Positions 54,301 through 62,232 of a DNA stretch of 64,000 bases are shown piece by piece. The notes under the pieces were generated by a model. It ran no database searches. It saw only the letters and a list, made by a program, of their open reading frames with translations, and was not told where the DNA came from. Each line of letters begins with the position of its first letter. Within the stretch, counting starts at the first letter, position 1. A program made the translations under genes and the position numbers. Source of the stretch: Auanema rhodensis (Eukaryota > Animalia > Nematoda); contig OZ059894.1 of NCBI GenBank assembly GCA_964057225.1, positions 10,850,001 through 10,914,000 of the forward strand, in the 5' to 3' direction.

Positions 54301-56033
54301 CATATCTTATGTATTAAGGTAGTCATTTTTATTCCGTTTGGAAGAATTTACTAAGTAAATATCTTCATAGGACATGGCAGGAGTTCTCAAGCCCGCCGCA
54401 GCGAAGCTGCTAATTACAGCTCTGAGAGACAAATTCCCTGACATTCCGATACATGTTCATTCACATGATACATCAGGTGCCGGTGTGGCGGCAATGTTGG
54501 AATGTGCCAAGGTACCTTTATAATAAGTTCAAAGTAATTCAGAAATTTTAGGCAGGAGCTGATGTTGTGGACGCAGCCGTTGACAGCATGAGTGGTATGA
54601 CTAGTCAGCCAAGTTTAGGAGCTGTGGTTGCTTCGCTACAAGGTACTCCACATGATACAGGTAAGAAGAATATTGCAAAAGACCATTCTTATTTTCAAAT
54701 TAGGTCTTTCTCTCGATAATATATCTAAATATTCTGCATATTGGGAGTCCACTCGGCAGCTCTATGCTCCTTTCGAATGCACTGTTACTATGAAAAGTGG
54801 TAATGCGGACGTATATAAACACGAAATTCCTGGAGGACAATATACAAACCTTCAATTCCAAGTATATTTAGGCAATGAAAAGCCTAAATCTTATCTTTAA
54901 TTAAGGCTTTTTCACTGGGCTTGGGCAATCAGTTTGATGATGTTAAGCGTATGTACCGTGAAGCAAACTTAGTATTAGGTGATATCATCAAAGTTACACC
55001 TTCTTCTAAGATTGTTGGAGACTTAGCCCAGTTTATGGTTCAAAATAACCTAACCAGAGAAACCCTCGTAGATCGAGCAGATGATTTATCATTTCCCAAA
55101 AGTGTTGTCGACTTTATGCAGGTTGGAAAAAATGCCTACAATCCTATCATTACTTTTGAAGGGCAGTATCGGACATCCTCCTTATGGTTTTCCTGAACCA
55201 CTCCGTACCAAAATTCTTCGTGGAAAAAAAAAAATTGAAGGAAGAGCTGGAGAACTTTTAGCACCCTTGGACTTAAACAGTTTGCGAAAGAGTTTGGAGG
55301 AAAAGCATGGACGAACATTGAGGTAAAGAAGGTTTTGGTTTACTAGTTTAAATGTGAATGATCCAGCGAAGAAGATGCTATGTCTTATGCCATGTTCCCT
55401 GATGTTTTTGATAAATTTGAGCAGTTTCGCCAGCGATATGGACCGGTGACCAAACTCCCAACTAGAATTTTCTTTACTGGTCTGGATATAGCGGAAGAAG
55501 TTGATGTCAGTATATAAATATGAATATACATATAAAAAACGCAAATGATTTAGGTTGAGCTTGAGGAGGGAAAAACTTTAGCTGTTCAATTACTCGCTGA
55601 GGGAAAACTTAATACACTTGGAGAAAGGGAAGTTTTCTTCGATTTGAATGGTCAAATGAGAAGTATTTATGTTCAAGATAAGGAGGCCAGCAAGGTTTAC
55701 GAGTATGATTCTATATCAGTACATATATATTAATTCAGGAAATTGTATCAAGACCTAAAGCTCTCCCTGGCGTTCGAGGATCCGTTGGAGCTCCGATGCC
55801 TGGAGATATTCTAGAACTTAGAGTGAAAGAAGGAGAAAAGGTTGTGATTATTTCAACTCCTATGATTACGATTAATGATTGAGGTTTCCCCTAAGCAACC
55901 GCTTTTTGTCTTATCAGCGATGAAGATGGAAATGGTTATTGATTCTCCAATTTCTGGTACTGTTAAAAAAATTCATGCCCTTCAAGGAACGAAATGTGCC
56001 GCTGGTGACCTAGTGGTAGAAATTGAACCATAA
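51332..56033 (+). CDS. pyc-1: Pyruvate carboxylase, mitochondrial (about 27 short introns)
   Basis: Arg-rich presequence; [12 protein letters not shown]; HPGYGFLSE; [11 protein letters not shown]; [13 protein letters not shown]; [16 protein letters not shown]; [11 protein letters not shown]; [11 protein letters not shown]; biotin-attachment AMKM at about 55918-55929. Confidence 0.98.
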
Positions 56034-56198
56034 ATTTTTTTTTTTTTAATCAAAACACATTATTAATTAAAAATAAATATTTTTAAACTTTAATGTTTAA
56101 TAATTCAATGAAAATAATACGTTTGGTCAGAGAGATATCTAATACATGATATATAGTAAAAACAGAACAAGTGTGATATTCCTTCCGTAACAACTATA

Positions 56199-58481
56199 CT
56201 AGATCATTTTTTTCAATCTTACTTCTAGTGTTTTGGTAACATGTGCACATGAAGCAGATGATAAGTTGTGAGAGTTAGTTGAAGAATAAATGCTTAATGT
56301 TTTTTCTCCAAATATCTGTAAATCAGTTATGAAGAGTTTTAAATGATATGCAACCTGATATCCAGTCTTGAATGAATTTCGCGTACGAATTACTAAAGCT
56401 ATACCCATGTCTTCCAGTCTTTGATTATACTCCTGATCAGATCCGTTGAAATACCACCCACGAGCACCTACAGTTCTAATGCTCAATATAACTTGATTTG
56501 ATACATACCTGGTATGGGTAGATCTATGCTGGCTGCCTGGCTGAAGACTATATCGCTGGCCGGTGTGTTTTTCTCTAAGTCATAGATCGGTCTCGAAATG
56601 TCACGAATGTTATCCAAATGTTTGATCTAAGCGGTAAAAGTTCGATAATTCAATTATGATTTTTTTTATTCACACTAAGTGGTAAACCTCCGTGTACGCA
56701 TAATATTCTTTCTTCGATGAGTGCACCAAATGGTAAATAGCCACATGCTCTCTGAATTATGTGTTCCACACATTTCGAAACTCTTCGTGTAAATCGTCCC
56801 TGAGAATACTAAAATAGAATTTAAGAAATTGGTCTAACTTGGATATTTATATTATAAACTTCTGTACTCCCGCGAAGAATGTAAACATGCTCTGGCAATT
56901 TTTGCTGAAAGAAAAATTATAAACTTATTAAAATATGTTTCGCAAATAACTTTTAGTGCGAAAATAAGTGCTAGTACTTCCAAAGAATATTCTGAAGATT
57001 CTTCAGTAATACCACCAAGAAACACTACTTTCTGACGTGGAGGCCAACCATTTAACAAAAACCAACGAAAAAGATCTCTGAATGAGAGAAGTGTGTGTAT
57101 TGAACTTTATGAAGTAATACTAACCCATAGTTGCCATCCAAATTCCCATAAATGTAGACATCTCCCGGTAAGTCTATCAATGATGATTCAGATCTCAAAA
57201 TATCTGCGACATTATCAAATAAATCGCCCAGCTATTGAATATATTTATATAAGAAAATAATGCACATATATATATATATATAAATATACCTCACAAGGGT
57301 CAAAGTCGAACCTGAAGGGGCCATGCTCGACAAGACGGGCAACTAGCGAATGATATTGACTGGGAAAATTTCTAATAACCTATAACCAACCCATTTTGTA
57401 AAGAAATGCCCTGATAAAACTTTTAACATACTGGTGCAGGATGTTCAAAATCTTTGCGAAATACAGATACTTCTGGAGAAATTTTTACCGTCTTATTTAT
57501 ATTTTTACGCGAATCATCTCTGATTGTAGCAATCTGTTTACAGTCATATAAAATTATTTTCAAATAAGTTCTCACATTTCCTTTATCAATACGCTTGATA
57601 GTTTCATTCATGGTTCTCAAATCTAGAAAACGAGGACTCAGACCTACTTTATTAGAAATTTGCCGCTCCTAAAATAAATTAATGAAAAACAAAAAAAAAA
57701 TGAATTTTATGTACTTGAAGAGCTGATTGTTTCTCTCGCAAGCAGTGAGCTTTTTCTGCTCTACGTAAACTAGCTGCACGGCGTTCTTTCAATAATCTGA
57801 ATGGTTTGGTAGAGTTTTCAAACCGTTTGAAATTTTATAAACTCATTCATGAAAGGTATCACAGAGGCGACAATTAGAAAGTATATTACTGTAGATGGCC
57901 ATACCCATTCCAGACTAACAGAATGCACTTGGTCATAGACTCTAATCTAATAAGAAAGTTAAAATGATAAAAAGATCAATAATCTTAACTCCTAAAGCTG
58001 TAAAGAGTGAGTTACAAAGATCATATGTACAACAAAAAAGTGAGCCTTTGTAACTTGTTGTCTAAATATATACTTCACAAGCAACTAGTTGATACTATGG
58101 TTACGCTATCATTATGAATAGTAGCCGATGTTAAGTAGTTTTGAAATCCTGTACCACATTTTGTTGGCAATGCCTCAGATGGAAAACAGCCATACATATC
58201 GTTTCTAACACCATTTTCATCAGGGCTATTTGAAATAAATTTTAAAAATTAACTAATTAAACTCTTACGTTTGCACGAGGTGAACACAAACAGGACTACT
58301 TAAATATGAGTTTCTATCATCGCAAGTTATAACTGAGTCCTCACCGTTGTAGCATTTCAACTAAAGCCAATTATTTAAAGTAAAACGCGAAATATCGTAG
58401 ATTACTAAAACTAACGTTGAATGCAATGGTGTTTACAAATACTCCAGAAGCTAGAAATAACGATATCAGGAACAACCGCAT
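56199..58481 (-). CDS. Type I membrane protein: signal peptide + 8-Cys three-finger (Ly6/activin-receptor-like) ectodomain + TM + degenerate PPP-family phosphatase domain
   Basis: One spliced frame: MRLFLISLFLASGVFVNTIAFN|LKCYNGEDSVITC..PVC..YGC..TKC..FCCTYDLCN..|WVWPSTVIYFLIVASVIPFMNE|LLKERRAASLRR..|..ILRSESSLIDLPGDVYIYGNLDGNYG|DLFRWF..GWPP..VVFLGGITEES..SLEVLALIFALK|..HVYILRGSTE..LPFGALIEERILCVHGGLP..LVIRTRN..GY..LSIYSSTN..*. Confidence 0.8.
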
Positions 58482-58834
58482 CCCTGGATGAATTAAATAA
58501 AAATGATTTTTTCCAATGAAACGATTTAAGTCGACAATTATGATAATTACAATCATATAACAGCCTTTGCTACCAAATATCATCATTTGTTCATTATTTT
58601 TACTATATAATATCAGTTTCATATTTTGTTCAGGCTAAGCCTAAAACAAAAGAAATCGTATACTTTAACAGAGGAGTGAAAAGTGAACATCAAAGAGCGC
58701 TAGCTTTCATTCGAGGTTAGCCCTGTTGATATATTGTATATTAGAAAATAAAGACATACAAAAAGGATTCAACTCGTAATTCTTTCGTGGTTTATTAATG
58801 TGGAGATCGGTGCAAAATTTACAACAACTGTCGT

Positions 58835-59350
58835 GGACACATAGGTGAAAAAAATATTTTTTTTTGTATATATATATAGTCATGTGCGATGAAAGTCGGA
58901 CACCCACTAGAAACCCTTATATCTGACAAGACAAACTACAAAAATTCAGAAAAAATATATTTTGGGTGTTAAAAAACGATAATGAATTCAGAAAAAATCT
59001 TAAAAATTTTTTAAATTATGTTTAAAAGTAATTTCTGAAGTCTCCGAAATTTTCATAAACTGCTTGAAGTCTTCTTTCTTGAATTTCAGAAGTTTCATCA
59101 AGGTTTCAGAAATAATTATTTGATAGAATGTTAGGAGTACACTAAACGTCTATTTTTCTTTTAAACGGAAGAATTTGGTTTACGTCAACCAAGTTCTCTT
59201 AACGTAAAATAAATAACGGTAAAATAAGCCAACTTGTAAGCGGAAAGTCGAAAATTGCAAAAAAGGGAAATCTGACTATCCCAAGACTAGAACTCAAAAC
59301 AACAGGAACAGTAACAATAACAAAAAAAAATTTTTTTTCACCTATGTGTC
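58835..59350. repeat. Inverted-repeat pair about 500 bp apart (possible MITE remnant)
   Basis: gacacataggtgaaaaaaa at 58835-58853 is the reverse complement of tttttttcacctatgtgtc at about 59332-59350. Confidence 0.45.
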
Positions 59351-60597: not shown

Positions 60598-62232
60598 CAG
60601 TAGCGGACAAAAAGATATAGCCTTTCTGAAATTTGTGTTTTTTTCATTCTATTTTTTTCTAACTATCTTGAAAAAAACTAGTTAATGTATTTTCTTTATG
60701 AGAAATGAATATATAAAAGTTATTATTACTCTCAGAACTTCGAAAACTTTTTGTTTTTGTTTTTTAATCTTTTATTGACCATATGCCCTTTAACTCAATG
60801 TAACATGCATATCAACACTAACTAGAATTATTAAAAAAAAAAAATTTCCAAAACTAAATTACATAATGATACTTCATAAAACATTAATGCACTCCTAATA
60901 CTTTGTAGCAAACCCGTTTGCTTCAATCACCGCCCGACAGCGTTGAGGCATTGACTCCAGCAAAGCATCGATTCGATGCTGTGGAATACTTCTCCATGCT
61001 TCTTCCAATTGTGAGAATTTTTCTTCTTCATTTCTTGCATGTCTTCCTGTTAAACATCTGCCGAGCTCTTCCCAAAGATGTTCTATGGGGTTCAAGTCAG
61101 GACTTTGACTTGGCCAGTCCATTCGCTGAAGGTTCTTGTCTTCGAACCACTTTTTCACGTCATGGGAGCGATGTTTCGGATCATTGTCGTCTTGGTAAAT
61201 GAAATGTTGTCCGATGTTTTCTTCAGCATACGGCAACATTGAGTCCTCCAGAATCTTCAAATAGTCGAATCTTGTCATGATTCCTTTAATGTGGACCAGA
61301 GGACCGACTCCATTTGCGGAGAAACAACCCCAGACAAAACAGGAACCTCCGCCATGTTTCACTGTTGGAGTTTGGTACTTCGGGTCATACCGTTTCCCGA
61401 TAGGTCTTCTTATATAGTGTATACCGTCTGTTCCAAACAGGGTATACTTGCTCTCGTCTGAGAAGACGACCTTTTTCCACTGATCCTGTCCCCAACTTAG
61501 ATGCTCACGAGCCCAAAGCACACGGTCTTTACGATTCTTTGCAGAGATGAGCGGCTTTTTCACGGGTCGTCGTCCGTTAAGTCCAGATGCACAGAGACGT
61601 CTTCGAACAGTTCTAACGGACGGTCTCTGGTTTTCTGGAAGCTGTAGATCCACCAGAATCTGTGTTGCATCTTTTCTGGGATCGCTTCTGGAGATCCTGA
61701 TGATGTTTCTGTCGGTTACTCTGTCCGTAACCCGTGGTCGTCCTGTGCTTTTTTTATGAATAAAGCCTCCTTGAACTGTCCACCTTCTTAACATGTTTGT
61801 AACAGTCTTTCTACTGATTCCAAATTGAGCAGCGAGCTGTTGATGCTTCATCCCTTGGCTTCTCCCTCTGATTATCGCATTTTGAACCTCCTCGGACAAG
61901 TTTTTTGAACCTCTTTGTCTTGCCATGCTGAGAAGATGAAAAATTATGTATTTTTTAATGAAATATAGAAAAAAAATGATAAAGACTTAGAAAACTTCAA
62001 AAAAAAACCAAAAAATTATTGTGGTTCAAATTGTGTTTTCAACGTATTTTTAATATGTTTTTAGTTTTTGCTTAATATGGATGTCAACATCTTTCTGAAA
62101 ATATTTTTTTTACATGTTTTTATATTTTAAACATTATTATTATTATTCATCTAAAGTGCAATCAGTTTTGGTAACGATCCAAGAAAGTTATATCAATTTA
62201 CAGAAAAGGCTATATCTTTTTGTCCGCTACTG
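60598..62232 (-). mobile_element. Intact Tc1-family DNA transposon, 1635 bp
   Basis: Perfect 28-bp TIRs CAGTAGCGGACAAAAAGATATAGCCTTT; TA target duplication at 60596-60597 and 62233-62234; single transposase ORF. Confidence 0.97.
60895..61926 (-). CDS. Tc1 transposase, 343 aa, DD34E
   Basis: Paired-like HTH, GRPR, VFSDESKY, TVKHGGGS..VWGCF, DNDPKH...SPDLNPIEHLW. There are 34 residues between the second D and the E (counted). Confidence 0.97.
   Translation of the reverse strand: MARQRGSKNLSEEVQNAIIRGRSQGMKHQQLAAQFGISRKTVTNMLRRWTVQGGFIHKKSTGRPRVTDRVTDRNIIRISRSDPRKDATQILVDLQLPENQRPSVRTVRRRLCASGLNGRRPVKKPLISAKNRKDRVLWAREHLSWGQDQWKKVVFSDESKYTLFGTDGIHYIRRPIGKRYDPKYQTPTVKHGGGSCFVWGCFSANGVGPLVHIKGIMTRFDYLKILEDSMLPYAEENIGQHFIYQDDNDPKHRSHDVKKWFEDKNLQRMDWPSQSPDLNPIEHLWEELGRCLTGRHARNEEEKFSQLEEAWRSIPQHRIDALLESMPQRCRAVIEANGFATKY

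Follow-up and report, generated by a model that had tools for sequence, protein, structure and literature searches.

Does a cysteine-rich, membrane-anchored ectodomain belong to the same gene as the PP1-like domain encoded next to it on the minus strand of this locus, and if so, what could a PP1 fold stripped of its catalytic residues do at a membrane? PPP phosphatases, among the most conserved eukaryotic enzymes, owe nearly all their regulation to soluble partner proteins. Receptor-type members exist among the tyrosine phosphatases and the Ser/Thr kinases. Joining a three-finger ectodomain across the membrane to a dead PP1 fold would be a new use of the PP1 scaffold, and the gene would make a tractable example of how a pseudoenzyme can arise when two neighbouring genes fuse. 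PPP-type pseudophosphatases have only recently been recognised by experiment (PfPPP8, 2023; PMC10317984).

Reading of the minus strand and scripted exon assembly yielded 16 exons between 58481 and 56199 in the 64,000-nucleotide stretch of DNA analysed here (the window). As the initial annotation had claimed, these exons join in a single frame, giving a CDS of 1,596 nt (531 codons and a stop) for a protein of 531 aa. All 15 introns are of the GT..AG type, 39-58 nt long, with a GC content of 23.9% against 38.2% in the exons.

Transcript evidence came from assembled spliced contigs of four runs of one study, a form of data in which minor isoforms are hidden and transcript ends and strand do not show. 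Each of the four assemblies contained one spliced contig record for the gene, 1,608-1,688 nt in length. Fourteen of the 15 junctions match the model exactly, 13 of them in all four runs, while the exon 1-2 junction is present in three, the X4 contig ending before it. The exact junctions include the two that flank the TM exon, 57990>57946 on the side of the Cys-rich domain and 57843>57796 on the cytoplasmic side. The remaining junction (57290/57231) lies within a skipped TA repeat and is implied by the arithmetic of the contig records: in X4, one piece ends at 57233 and another starts at 57430, and the 86 letters that separate them equal the 90-nt exon 9 minus two ambiguous letters on either side. 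The assembled mRNA carries 16-21 nt 5' of the ATG and 71-78 nt 3' of the stop, and the start codon of the model is the first ATG of the transcript. This is a real, expressed nematode gene, one gene with one mRNA. The initial annotation had looked to two separate transcripts as the outcome contrary to its reading; a single fused contig was found in all four assemblies. Coordinates are collected in Table 1.

Table 1. Positions in the window of the exons, the transcript and the protein features of the gene
Feature	Position	Strand	Basis
Assembled mRNA; 5' end ~58497-58502, 3' end ~56121-56128	56121..58502	-	RNA contigs
Exons 1-4	58481-58416, 58360-58269, 58225-58105, 58061-57990	-	Gene model, RNA contig junctions
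Exons 5-8	57946-57843, 57796-57715, 57668-57576, 57533-57432	-	Gene model, RNA contig junctions
Exons 9-12	57379-57290, 57231-57125, 57077-56951, 56904-56839	-	Gene model, RNA contig junctions
Exons 13-16	56799-56674, 56626-56509, 56467-56355, 56315-56199	-	Gene model, RNA contig junctions
Predicted signal peptide, exon 1, residues 1-22 (MR, hydrophobic core, NTIA/FN)	58416..58481	-	Hydropathy peak 2.17; starts at first ATG of transcript
8-Cys ectodomain, exons 2-4, residues 23-110, LKCY to CCTYDLCN	58011..58360	-	Cys positions, CC....CN
Stalk, 20 residues, ahead of TM helix	58010-57908	-	Between ectodomain and TM helix
Intron 4; in exon 4 frame a 15-residue hydrophobic, GPI-signal-like tail, stop just past the intron	57947..57989	-	Hypothetical isoform; none in RNA contigs
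Predicted TM helix, exon 5, residues 131-150	57848..57907	-	Only internal hydropathy peak
Predicted cytoplasmic basic juxtamembrane stretch and linker, residues 151-255	57347..57847	-	Charge; open bridge exons 5-6
In-frame Met199, within linker	57611-57609	-	Translation
PP1-like, predicted pseudophosphatase domain, residues ~256-531 (aligned core 273-507)	56202..57346	-	phmmer, PP1 profile, exon-level PDB matches
GNLDG replacing GDxHG (D64N, H66D)	57133..57147	-	PP1 alignment
GGITEES replacing GDYVDRG (D92G, D95E, R96E)	56996..57016	-	PP1 alignment
GSTE replacing GNHE (N124S, H125T); RGNHE>RGSTE	56860..56871	-	PP1 alignment
HGG kept (His173 equivalent, model H410); HGGL kept	56686..56694	-	PP1 alignment, PDB match
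RTRN replacing RAHQ (H248R)	56376..56387	-	PP1 alignment
SSTNS replacing SAPNY (Y272S)	56271..56285	-	PP1 alignment

The N-terminal part of the protein has the layout of a type I membrane protein. Hydropathy peaks occur at only two places, the predicted signal peptide and the TM helix, and five Lys/Arg residues fall in the 15 positions after this helix against one before it, in keeping with the positive-inside rule. Hydropathy, Cys positions and charge thus all agree with the annotated order of signal peptide, eight-Cys ectodomain with a three-finger pattern, and TM segment followed by basic residues. The eight cysteines lie at residues 25, 35, 47, 66, 76, 103, 104 and 109 (3, 13, 25, 44, 54, 81, 82 and 87, then Asn, in mature numbering), and there is one N-glycosylation sequon (NDS, residue 91). 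Ly6/uPAR (LU) domains are recognised by 8-10 Cys with conserved spacing and a C-terminal CCxxxxCN box, and the ectodomain has these features; the CC....CN pattern occurs in the six-frame translation of the whole window only here. Judged from the translation, the Cys spacing and the CCxxDLCN box are those of the three-finger fold of Ly6/uPAR proteins and TGF-beta-receptor ectodomains. Searched against the PDB, the CC-box exon matched only the SLURP-1 and BMPR2 ectodomains (two proteins, three PDB sequences), at a non-significant E of 2-9, aligning to residues 70-80 of SLURP-1, the best match, and residues 84-97 of BMPR2. Exons 2 and 3 alone matched no three-finger protein in the PDB, and exons 2, 3 and 4, submitted singly to Pfam as pieces of 24-40 aa, matched no family at E up to 10, including UPAR_LY6 and Activin_recp. 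The three-finger fold, to which the Cys pattern and the weak CC-box exon matches point, is not established.

The C-terminal part is related to PP1. In a local phmmer comparison with 25 real PP1 ORFs the spliced protein scored 95.6 bits (E 4e-30), while 50 shuffled controls reached at most 6.3 bits; against a PP1 profile it scored 109 bits. Significant similarity to the catalytic core, the mark of PPP superfamily homology, is present at ~28% identity to PP1. At exon level the PDB gave matches to PP1, calcineurin and BSU1, covering PP1 residues 70-110 and the HGG region; searches there with exons 10, 15 and 16 singly gave nothing meaningful. In Pfam, exon 13 alone, a single-exon query, scored 12.7 bits for Metallophos against a cut-off of 21.5, and ten single-exon pieces gave nothing beyond this sub-threshold match.

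Most catalytic motifs had been described as substituted, and the alignment bears this out, with the substitutions falling in aligned PP1 columns. Of the six metal ligands H173 alone is left, D64, H66, D92, N124 and H248 all being replaced, and the replaced residues outside the ligand set are H125, the general acid, its partner D95, R96 and Y272. The claim that only HGG is kept was right as to HGG and too narrow otherwise, since Arg221 (model R458) is also retained; N271 is kept as well. The PPP signature, GDxHG, GDxVDRG and GNHE with six metal ligands, is absent. Because these ligands and H125, D95, R96 and Y272 are lost, the domain is, by its sequence, a pseudophosphatase, a family homologue without catalytic competence that would be unable to assemble the two-metal centre.

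Relatives of the gene were sought with exon pieces. An 88-aa piece from exons 15-16 had no match in a representative library of 1.8 billion proteins, for which the query is too short and divergent, and a second homologue search with the same piece gave no candidates. Composite queries, in which a stop-free metagenome "shadow" ORF served as length carrier for 15 exon pieces (A2) or for one (A4), returned no matches. Local tests put the score of the exact protein at 173 bits for A2 and 65 bits for A4; because both searches were blank, the exact protein seems to be absent, at 222-707 aa, from the database searched with these carrier queries, a result that bears on the exact protein and is not informative on divergent orthologues. 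Scores of exon-piece queries in the ESM Atlas were at most 0.82, which is noise. The exon-piece searches thus found no orthologue or paralogue, and support for conservation or purifying selection consists of the intact frame. As far as the literature was searched, neither a PPP of membrane or receptor type nor a fusion of Ly6 with a phosphatase was found, and the layout is without a found description for the PPP superfamily.

The locus could instead be read as two genes, or as two main products: a GPI-anchored Ly6-type protein from exons 1-4 and the intron 4 tail, and a soluble, 333-aa PP1-like protein running from Met199 to the stop, the fused mRNA being a read-through or chimera. The length of the latter fits an ordinary PP1, and intron 4 read in frame gives a 15-aa tail followed by a stop, whose mean hydropathy of 2.09 makes it the most hydrophobic among the longer read-through tails. 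Rare variants are dropped from contigs, so such isoforms could exist unseen. However, the fused form is the only one assembled in all four runs, with exons 4>5 and 5>6 joined exactly, and introns 4-6, at only 43-46 nt, are too short to accommodate an intercistronic region along with a poly(A) site. Bridge exons 5-6 are open in frame over 62 codons (chance ~0.006 at 0.08 stops per codon), whereas the two alternative frames contain 5 and 6 stops, and these exons encode a textbook TM helix with a basic stop-transfer stretch. Hydrophobic tails are also partly expected from T-rich introns, as the read-through tails of introns 3 and 9 illustrate (1.8 and 1.6). GPI-anchored Ly6 proteins have a GPI signal directly after the LU domain and no cytoplasmic domain; here a GPI-like tail appears only when intron 4 is retained. 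We regard two separate products as decidedly unlikely. In the single-gene reading that we prefer, the same features may be traces of an origin from two ancestral genes, one a Ly6 gene of the GPI type and the other an adjacent PP1-like gene, joined by splicing through the two bridge exons, with the GPI-signal-like tail in the intron 4 frame left from one and the Met199 start from the other.

Granted a single gene, it might be a young, lineage-specific chimera in which nothing but the Ly6 and TM part is of consequence, the PP1-like portion being an inert cytoplasmic tail drifting to loss. The low identity to PP1, the loss of nearly every catalytic residue and the blank exon-piece searches fit this account, but ~275 codons over ten exons are still open with all splice sites canonical, the PP1 profile score fits a still-folded domain, and 32 of the 80 PP1-invariant columns (40%) are kept, including the core motifs LPxxAL, HGG and RG. 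Because these columns are kept and all 16 exons and their splice sites are intact, the domain appears to be maintained rather than decayed, and an inert tail is unlikely. An active but atypical membrane-bound phosphoesterase with a different ligand set is highly improbable. In its favour, H173, R221 and N271 are still present, and carboxylates near the old site are supplied by H66>D, D95>E and R96>E. Against it, the general acid and all metal ligands but one have been exchanged, for residues that include G, S, T, N and R, and in PPPs a single change at one of the metal-site aspartates already abolishes activity, as summarised for PfPPP8 (PMC10317984).

On balance, we favour one expressed gene of two-gene fusion origin that encodes a 531-residue type I protein with an 8-Cys ectodomain, a TM helix and a dead PP1 acting as a docking module. 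The signal peptide would be cleaved, placing the 88-residue 8-Cys domain in an extracellular or luminal position. From there the chain runs through a short stalk and a single TM helix to a basic juxtamembrane stretch; a linker of ~100 residues then leads to a PP1-type PPP domain of full length. The dead domain would retain the PP1 fold and might serve as a non-catalytic docking module at the membrane, binding the usual PP1 binders or partners of its own and recruiting or sequestering them. The ectodomain, by analogy with Ly6 and receptor ectodomains, could be the binding site for an extracellular or luminal partner; the ligand sensing proposed in the initial annotation would be conjectural.

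The RVxF docking groove, with its residue list taken from PMC9582199, bears on the docking step. I169, L243 and Y255 are kept and F257I and R261K are conservative, an identity of three in eight that is no better than the background retention of PP1-invariant columns; an enrichment of conserved residues in the groove was therefore rejected. Because groove retention is no better than this overall level, the docking function is a guess from sequence. A phospho-Ser/Thr "trap" was likewise rejected, and the phospho-Ser/Thr-binding scaffold proposed in the initial annotation is unlikely, because the metals that hold phosphate in PP1 and Arg96 are gone.

A bolder reading would make this the first receptor-type PPP, a conserved nematode surface receptor resembling the TGF-beta receptors, with a dead PP1 in place of the kinase and with ectodomain binding controlling the capture of PP1 interactors at the membrane. 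We consider it rather unlikely. Possible sites of action would include sperm, in which the PP1-like proteins of nematodes are concentrated, and neurons, in which channels are modulated by Ly6 proteins. If limited to one genus, the gene would be a curiosity of gene birth; if conserved across rhabditid nematodes, parasites included, it would represent a new surface-protein class.

PP1 catalytic subunits are soluble proteins of ~300-330 aa, represented in nematodes by GSP-1/2, the sperm proteins GSP-3/4 and a large PP1-like expansion. PP1 is homologous to the core of the gene product, residues 273-507, with identical motif spacing and an alignable N-terminal helix and C-terminal strand, whereas the gene product differs in the metal ligands and catalytic residues given above and adds a signal peptide, ectodomain and TM helix in front. 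Ly6 proteins are either secreted or attached to the membrane by a GPI anchor, and they lack a cytoplasmic domain. The ectodomain shares with Ly6/uPAR proteins (SLURP-1, CD59, Drosophila Sleepless/Boudin, C. elegans ODR-2/HOT) the LxCY start and the CCxxDLCN end, and its 8-Cys core maps onto the four conserved three-finger disulfides, but it is without the extra loop-1 disulfide typical of Ly6, and the spliced mRNA goes on to encode a TM helix with 381 cytoplasmic residues behind it.

The TGF-beta/activin/BMP receptor kinases (BMPR2; nematode DAF-4, DAF-1 and SMA-6) have the same signal peptide, three-finger-type Cys-rich ectodomain ending in CCxxDLCN and single TM helix, and their cytoplasmic domain also belongs to the world of phospho-Ser/Thr signalling. 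These receptors carry a cytoplasmic kinase domain, with a GS box in type I, whereas the gene has a dead, PP1-like PPP fold and no GS box, and its ectodomain opens with LxCY in the manner of Ly6 and contains 8 Cys where the receptors have 10. IA-2/PTPRN and C. elegans IDA-1 are type I membrane, receptor-type pseudophosphatases of the tyrosine-phosphatase family, with an inactive cytoplasmic phosphatase-fold domain, and plant KAPP is a membrane-anchored Ser/Thr phosphatase (PP2C). These resemble the gene in concept, but their folds (PTP and PPM against PPP) and ectodomains are unrelated to it. Plasmodium PfPPP8 is a PPP-type pseudophosphatase with mutated metal-binding motifs and a proposed non-catalytic role. 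It is a cytoskeletal protein of the basal complex, lacks both ectodomain and TM helix, and has one changed motif (GDxxDRG>GNLINRG; PMC10317984). Mutated metal-binding motifs in a PPP domain are common to both proteins, but the gene described here has changes in all three signature motifs as well as in RAHQ and SAPNY, and its product spans the membrane.

The Cys-rich, transmembrane (TM) and cytoplasmic exons of the minus-strand gene are joined in one mRNA. Assembled contigs from four RNA runs of a single study (X1–X4) were placed on positions 55900–58900; such assemblies lose rare isoforms and leave the ends of molecules invisible. Each run gave one contig over the locus, of 1,608–1,688 nt and with zero mismatches to the genome, and these represent RNA since the introns are absent from them. 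Fourteen of the 15 splice junctions occur in the contigs exactly at the modelled positions, 13 of them in every run and the exon 1–2 junction in three, as the X4 contig ends before it. The remaining junction, between exons 9 and 10 (57290/57231), falls in a TA repeat that is skipped in contig placement; in X4, 86 letters lie between the piece ends at 57233 and 57430, corresponding to the 90-nt exon 9 minus 2+2 ambiguous letters. The initial annotation had read the locus as one gene, and this is borne out by two junctions spliced in the contigs of this one study: 57990>57946 connects the final Cys-rich-domain exon with the TM exon, and 57843>57796 connects the TM exon with the first of the cytoplasmic exons. 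The contigs begin 16–21 nt ahead of the transcript's first ATG (58481) and end 71–78 nt beyond the stop codon.

With a GC content of 32%, the window is AT-rich, and it has the character of a short-intron nematode genome. All 15 introns are of the GT...AG type and 39–58 nt in length, and the spliced coding sequence is a single open frame of 1,596 nt (531 codons), with a GC content of 38.2% in exons versus 23.9% in introns. Exons 5 and 6, which bridge the Cys-rich and PP1-like parts, contain 62 codons without a stop, while the alternative two frames contain 5 and 6 stops; at 0.08 stops per codon, the rate in non-coding frames, the chance of such an opening is about 0.006.

Coordinates of the gene, internal elements and neighbouring features
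Feature	Position	Strand	Description
16-exon gene	58481-56199	minus	exons assembled from sequence
Intron 4	57947-57989	minus	
Met199 codon	57609-57611	minus	exon 7, in frame
TA-dinucleotide repeat	57257-57295		inside intron 9
Tc1/mariner-type transposase ORF	60895-61926	minus	343 aa, intact; HTH_Tnp_Tc3_2 and DDE_3; 2.4 kb upstream of gene
Last exon of convergent neighbour gene	55875-56033	plus	biotinyl/lipoyl carrier domain (Pfam Biotin_lipoyl, E 2.5e-12)

Hydropathy analysis of the spliced protein revealed only two peaks, which sequence rules identify as a predicted signal peptide (residues 1–22) and a predicted TM helix (residues 131–150). Of the 15 residues preceding the helix one is Lys/Arg, as against five of the 15 that follow it; therefore, the C-terminal 381 residues are predicted to be cytoplasmic, and the same rules assign the protein a type I topology.

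The putative ectodomain (residues 23–110) opens with LKCY, closes with CCTYDLCN and contains eight Cys, at positions 3, 13, 25, 44, 54, 81, 82 and 87 of the mature protein. These positions match the four disulfides at the core of the three-finger fold, as in CD59 and snake toxins; most Ly6 proteins have a further disulfide in loop 1, which is missing here. The CC....CN pattern occurs once in a six-frame translation of the entire window. Comparison of the 24-residue exon encoding this box with all PDB sequences returned three matches, SLURP-1 and two BMPR2 ectodomains, each falling on its own C-terminal box at E values of 2–9 that are not significant alone. Exons 2 and 3, searched singly against the PDB, returned nothing relevant, and a Pfam scan of the ectodomain exons one by one returned no family. 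A three-finger fold is thus a well-motivated but unproven assignment. Ly6 proteins and receptor ectodomains have other surface proteins or ligands as partners.

For the cytoplasmic region, 119 metagenome loci with a PP1-specific motif provided full-length intronless PP1 ORFs, 25 of which were compared locally. Using phmmer, the spliced model matched these 25 ORFs over residues 283–507 (95.6 bits, E 4e-30), with a maximum of 6.3 bits among 50 shuffled controls, and a PP1 profile matched residues 273–507 at 109 bits. PDB searches with single exons point the same way: exon 11 aligned to residues 70–110 of PP1-alpha, and exon 13 matched calcineurin, BSU1 and PP1 in their LPxxAL...HGG region. The model is about 28% identical to an animal-type PP1 and retains 32 of the 80 columns invariant across the 25 PP1s. 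By these alignments, the predicted cytoplasmic domain is shown to be a PP1 homologue.

With sites numbered as in PP1-alpha structures, the alignment reveals nine substitutions (D64>N, H66>D, D92>G, D95>E, R96>E, N124>S, H125>T, H248>R and Y272>S), in agreement with the motif changes listed in the initial annotation. Its statement that only HGG is kept holds for HGG itself (H173) but overlooks Arg221, which is retained as well. With five of its six ligands replaced, the two-metal centre cannot form, making the domain a pseudophosphatase with a destroyed active site. The dead domain would still fold, since ten exons are intact and core motifs are retained, and may act at the membrane as a docking module. 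In the RVxF groove (residues listed in PMC9582199), I169, L243 and Y255 are unchanged, with conservative replacements at two more sites (F257>I and R261>K); this retention is no better than the invariant-column background, so the groove is not singled out. A role as a phosphate 'trap' is unlikely, as the metals and R96 are lost.

Two putative relics suggest that the gene arose by fusion of neighbouring genes. Intron 4 would continue the reading frame of exon 4 for 15 hydrophobic residues, with a stop just beyond the intron, so that its retention would give a hypothetical 132-aa Ly6-type protein; the tail resembles a GPI signal as found in ordinary Ly6 genes and could be a relic marking where an ancestral gene ended, or belong to a minor isoform. 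The stretch from Met199 to the stop, 333 residues, matches an ordinary PP1 in size; this Met may have been the ancestral start of a phosphatase-like gene, or a trans-spliced short isoform may begin there. The same relics define the main alternative, in which the locus yields two separate products: a GPI-anchored Ly6 protein plus a soluble pseudo-PP1. We consider this improbable: the fused form is the only form assembled, introns 4–6 (43–46 nt) leave no intergenic space, and the bridge exons code for a clean TM helix and a stop-transfer stretch.

A single fused membrane protein would combine known kinds. It is homologous to PP1 yet falls outside the catalytic definition of that family; it shows the Ly6 (LU/three-finger) motif pattern but not the GPI anchor, and the layout of TGF-beta receptors but not their kinase domain. 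The nearest concept is that of receptor-type pseudophosphatases such as IA-2, whose PTP fold is unrelated. Full-text searching of the literature turned up no PP1-like protein that is receptor-type or TM-anchored, and sequence searches with exon pieces, some as unorthodox length-carrier queries, found no relatives. Because local controls indicate that the exact protein would have scored as detectable in the length-carrier searches, it is probably absent from the database searched. That result covers the exact protein and hardly its divergent orthologues, and we therefore do not call the protein categorically new.

The convergent neighbour gene has an RNA contig word depth of ~292 in X1 and X3 versus 8–13 in X2 and X4, indicating that the four samples are of two kinds.
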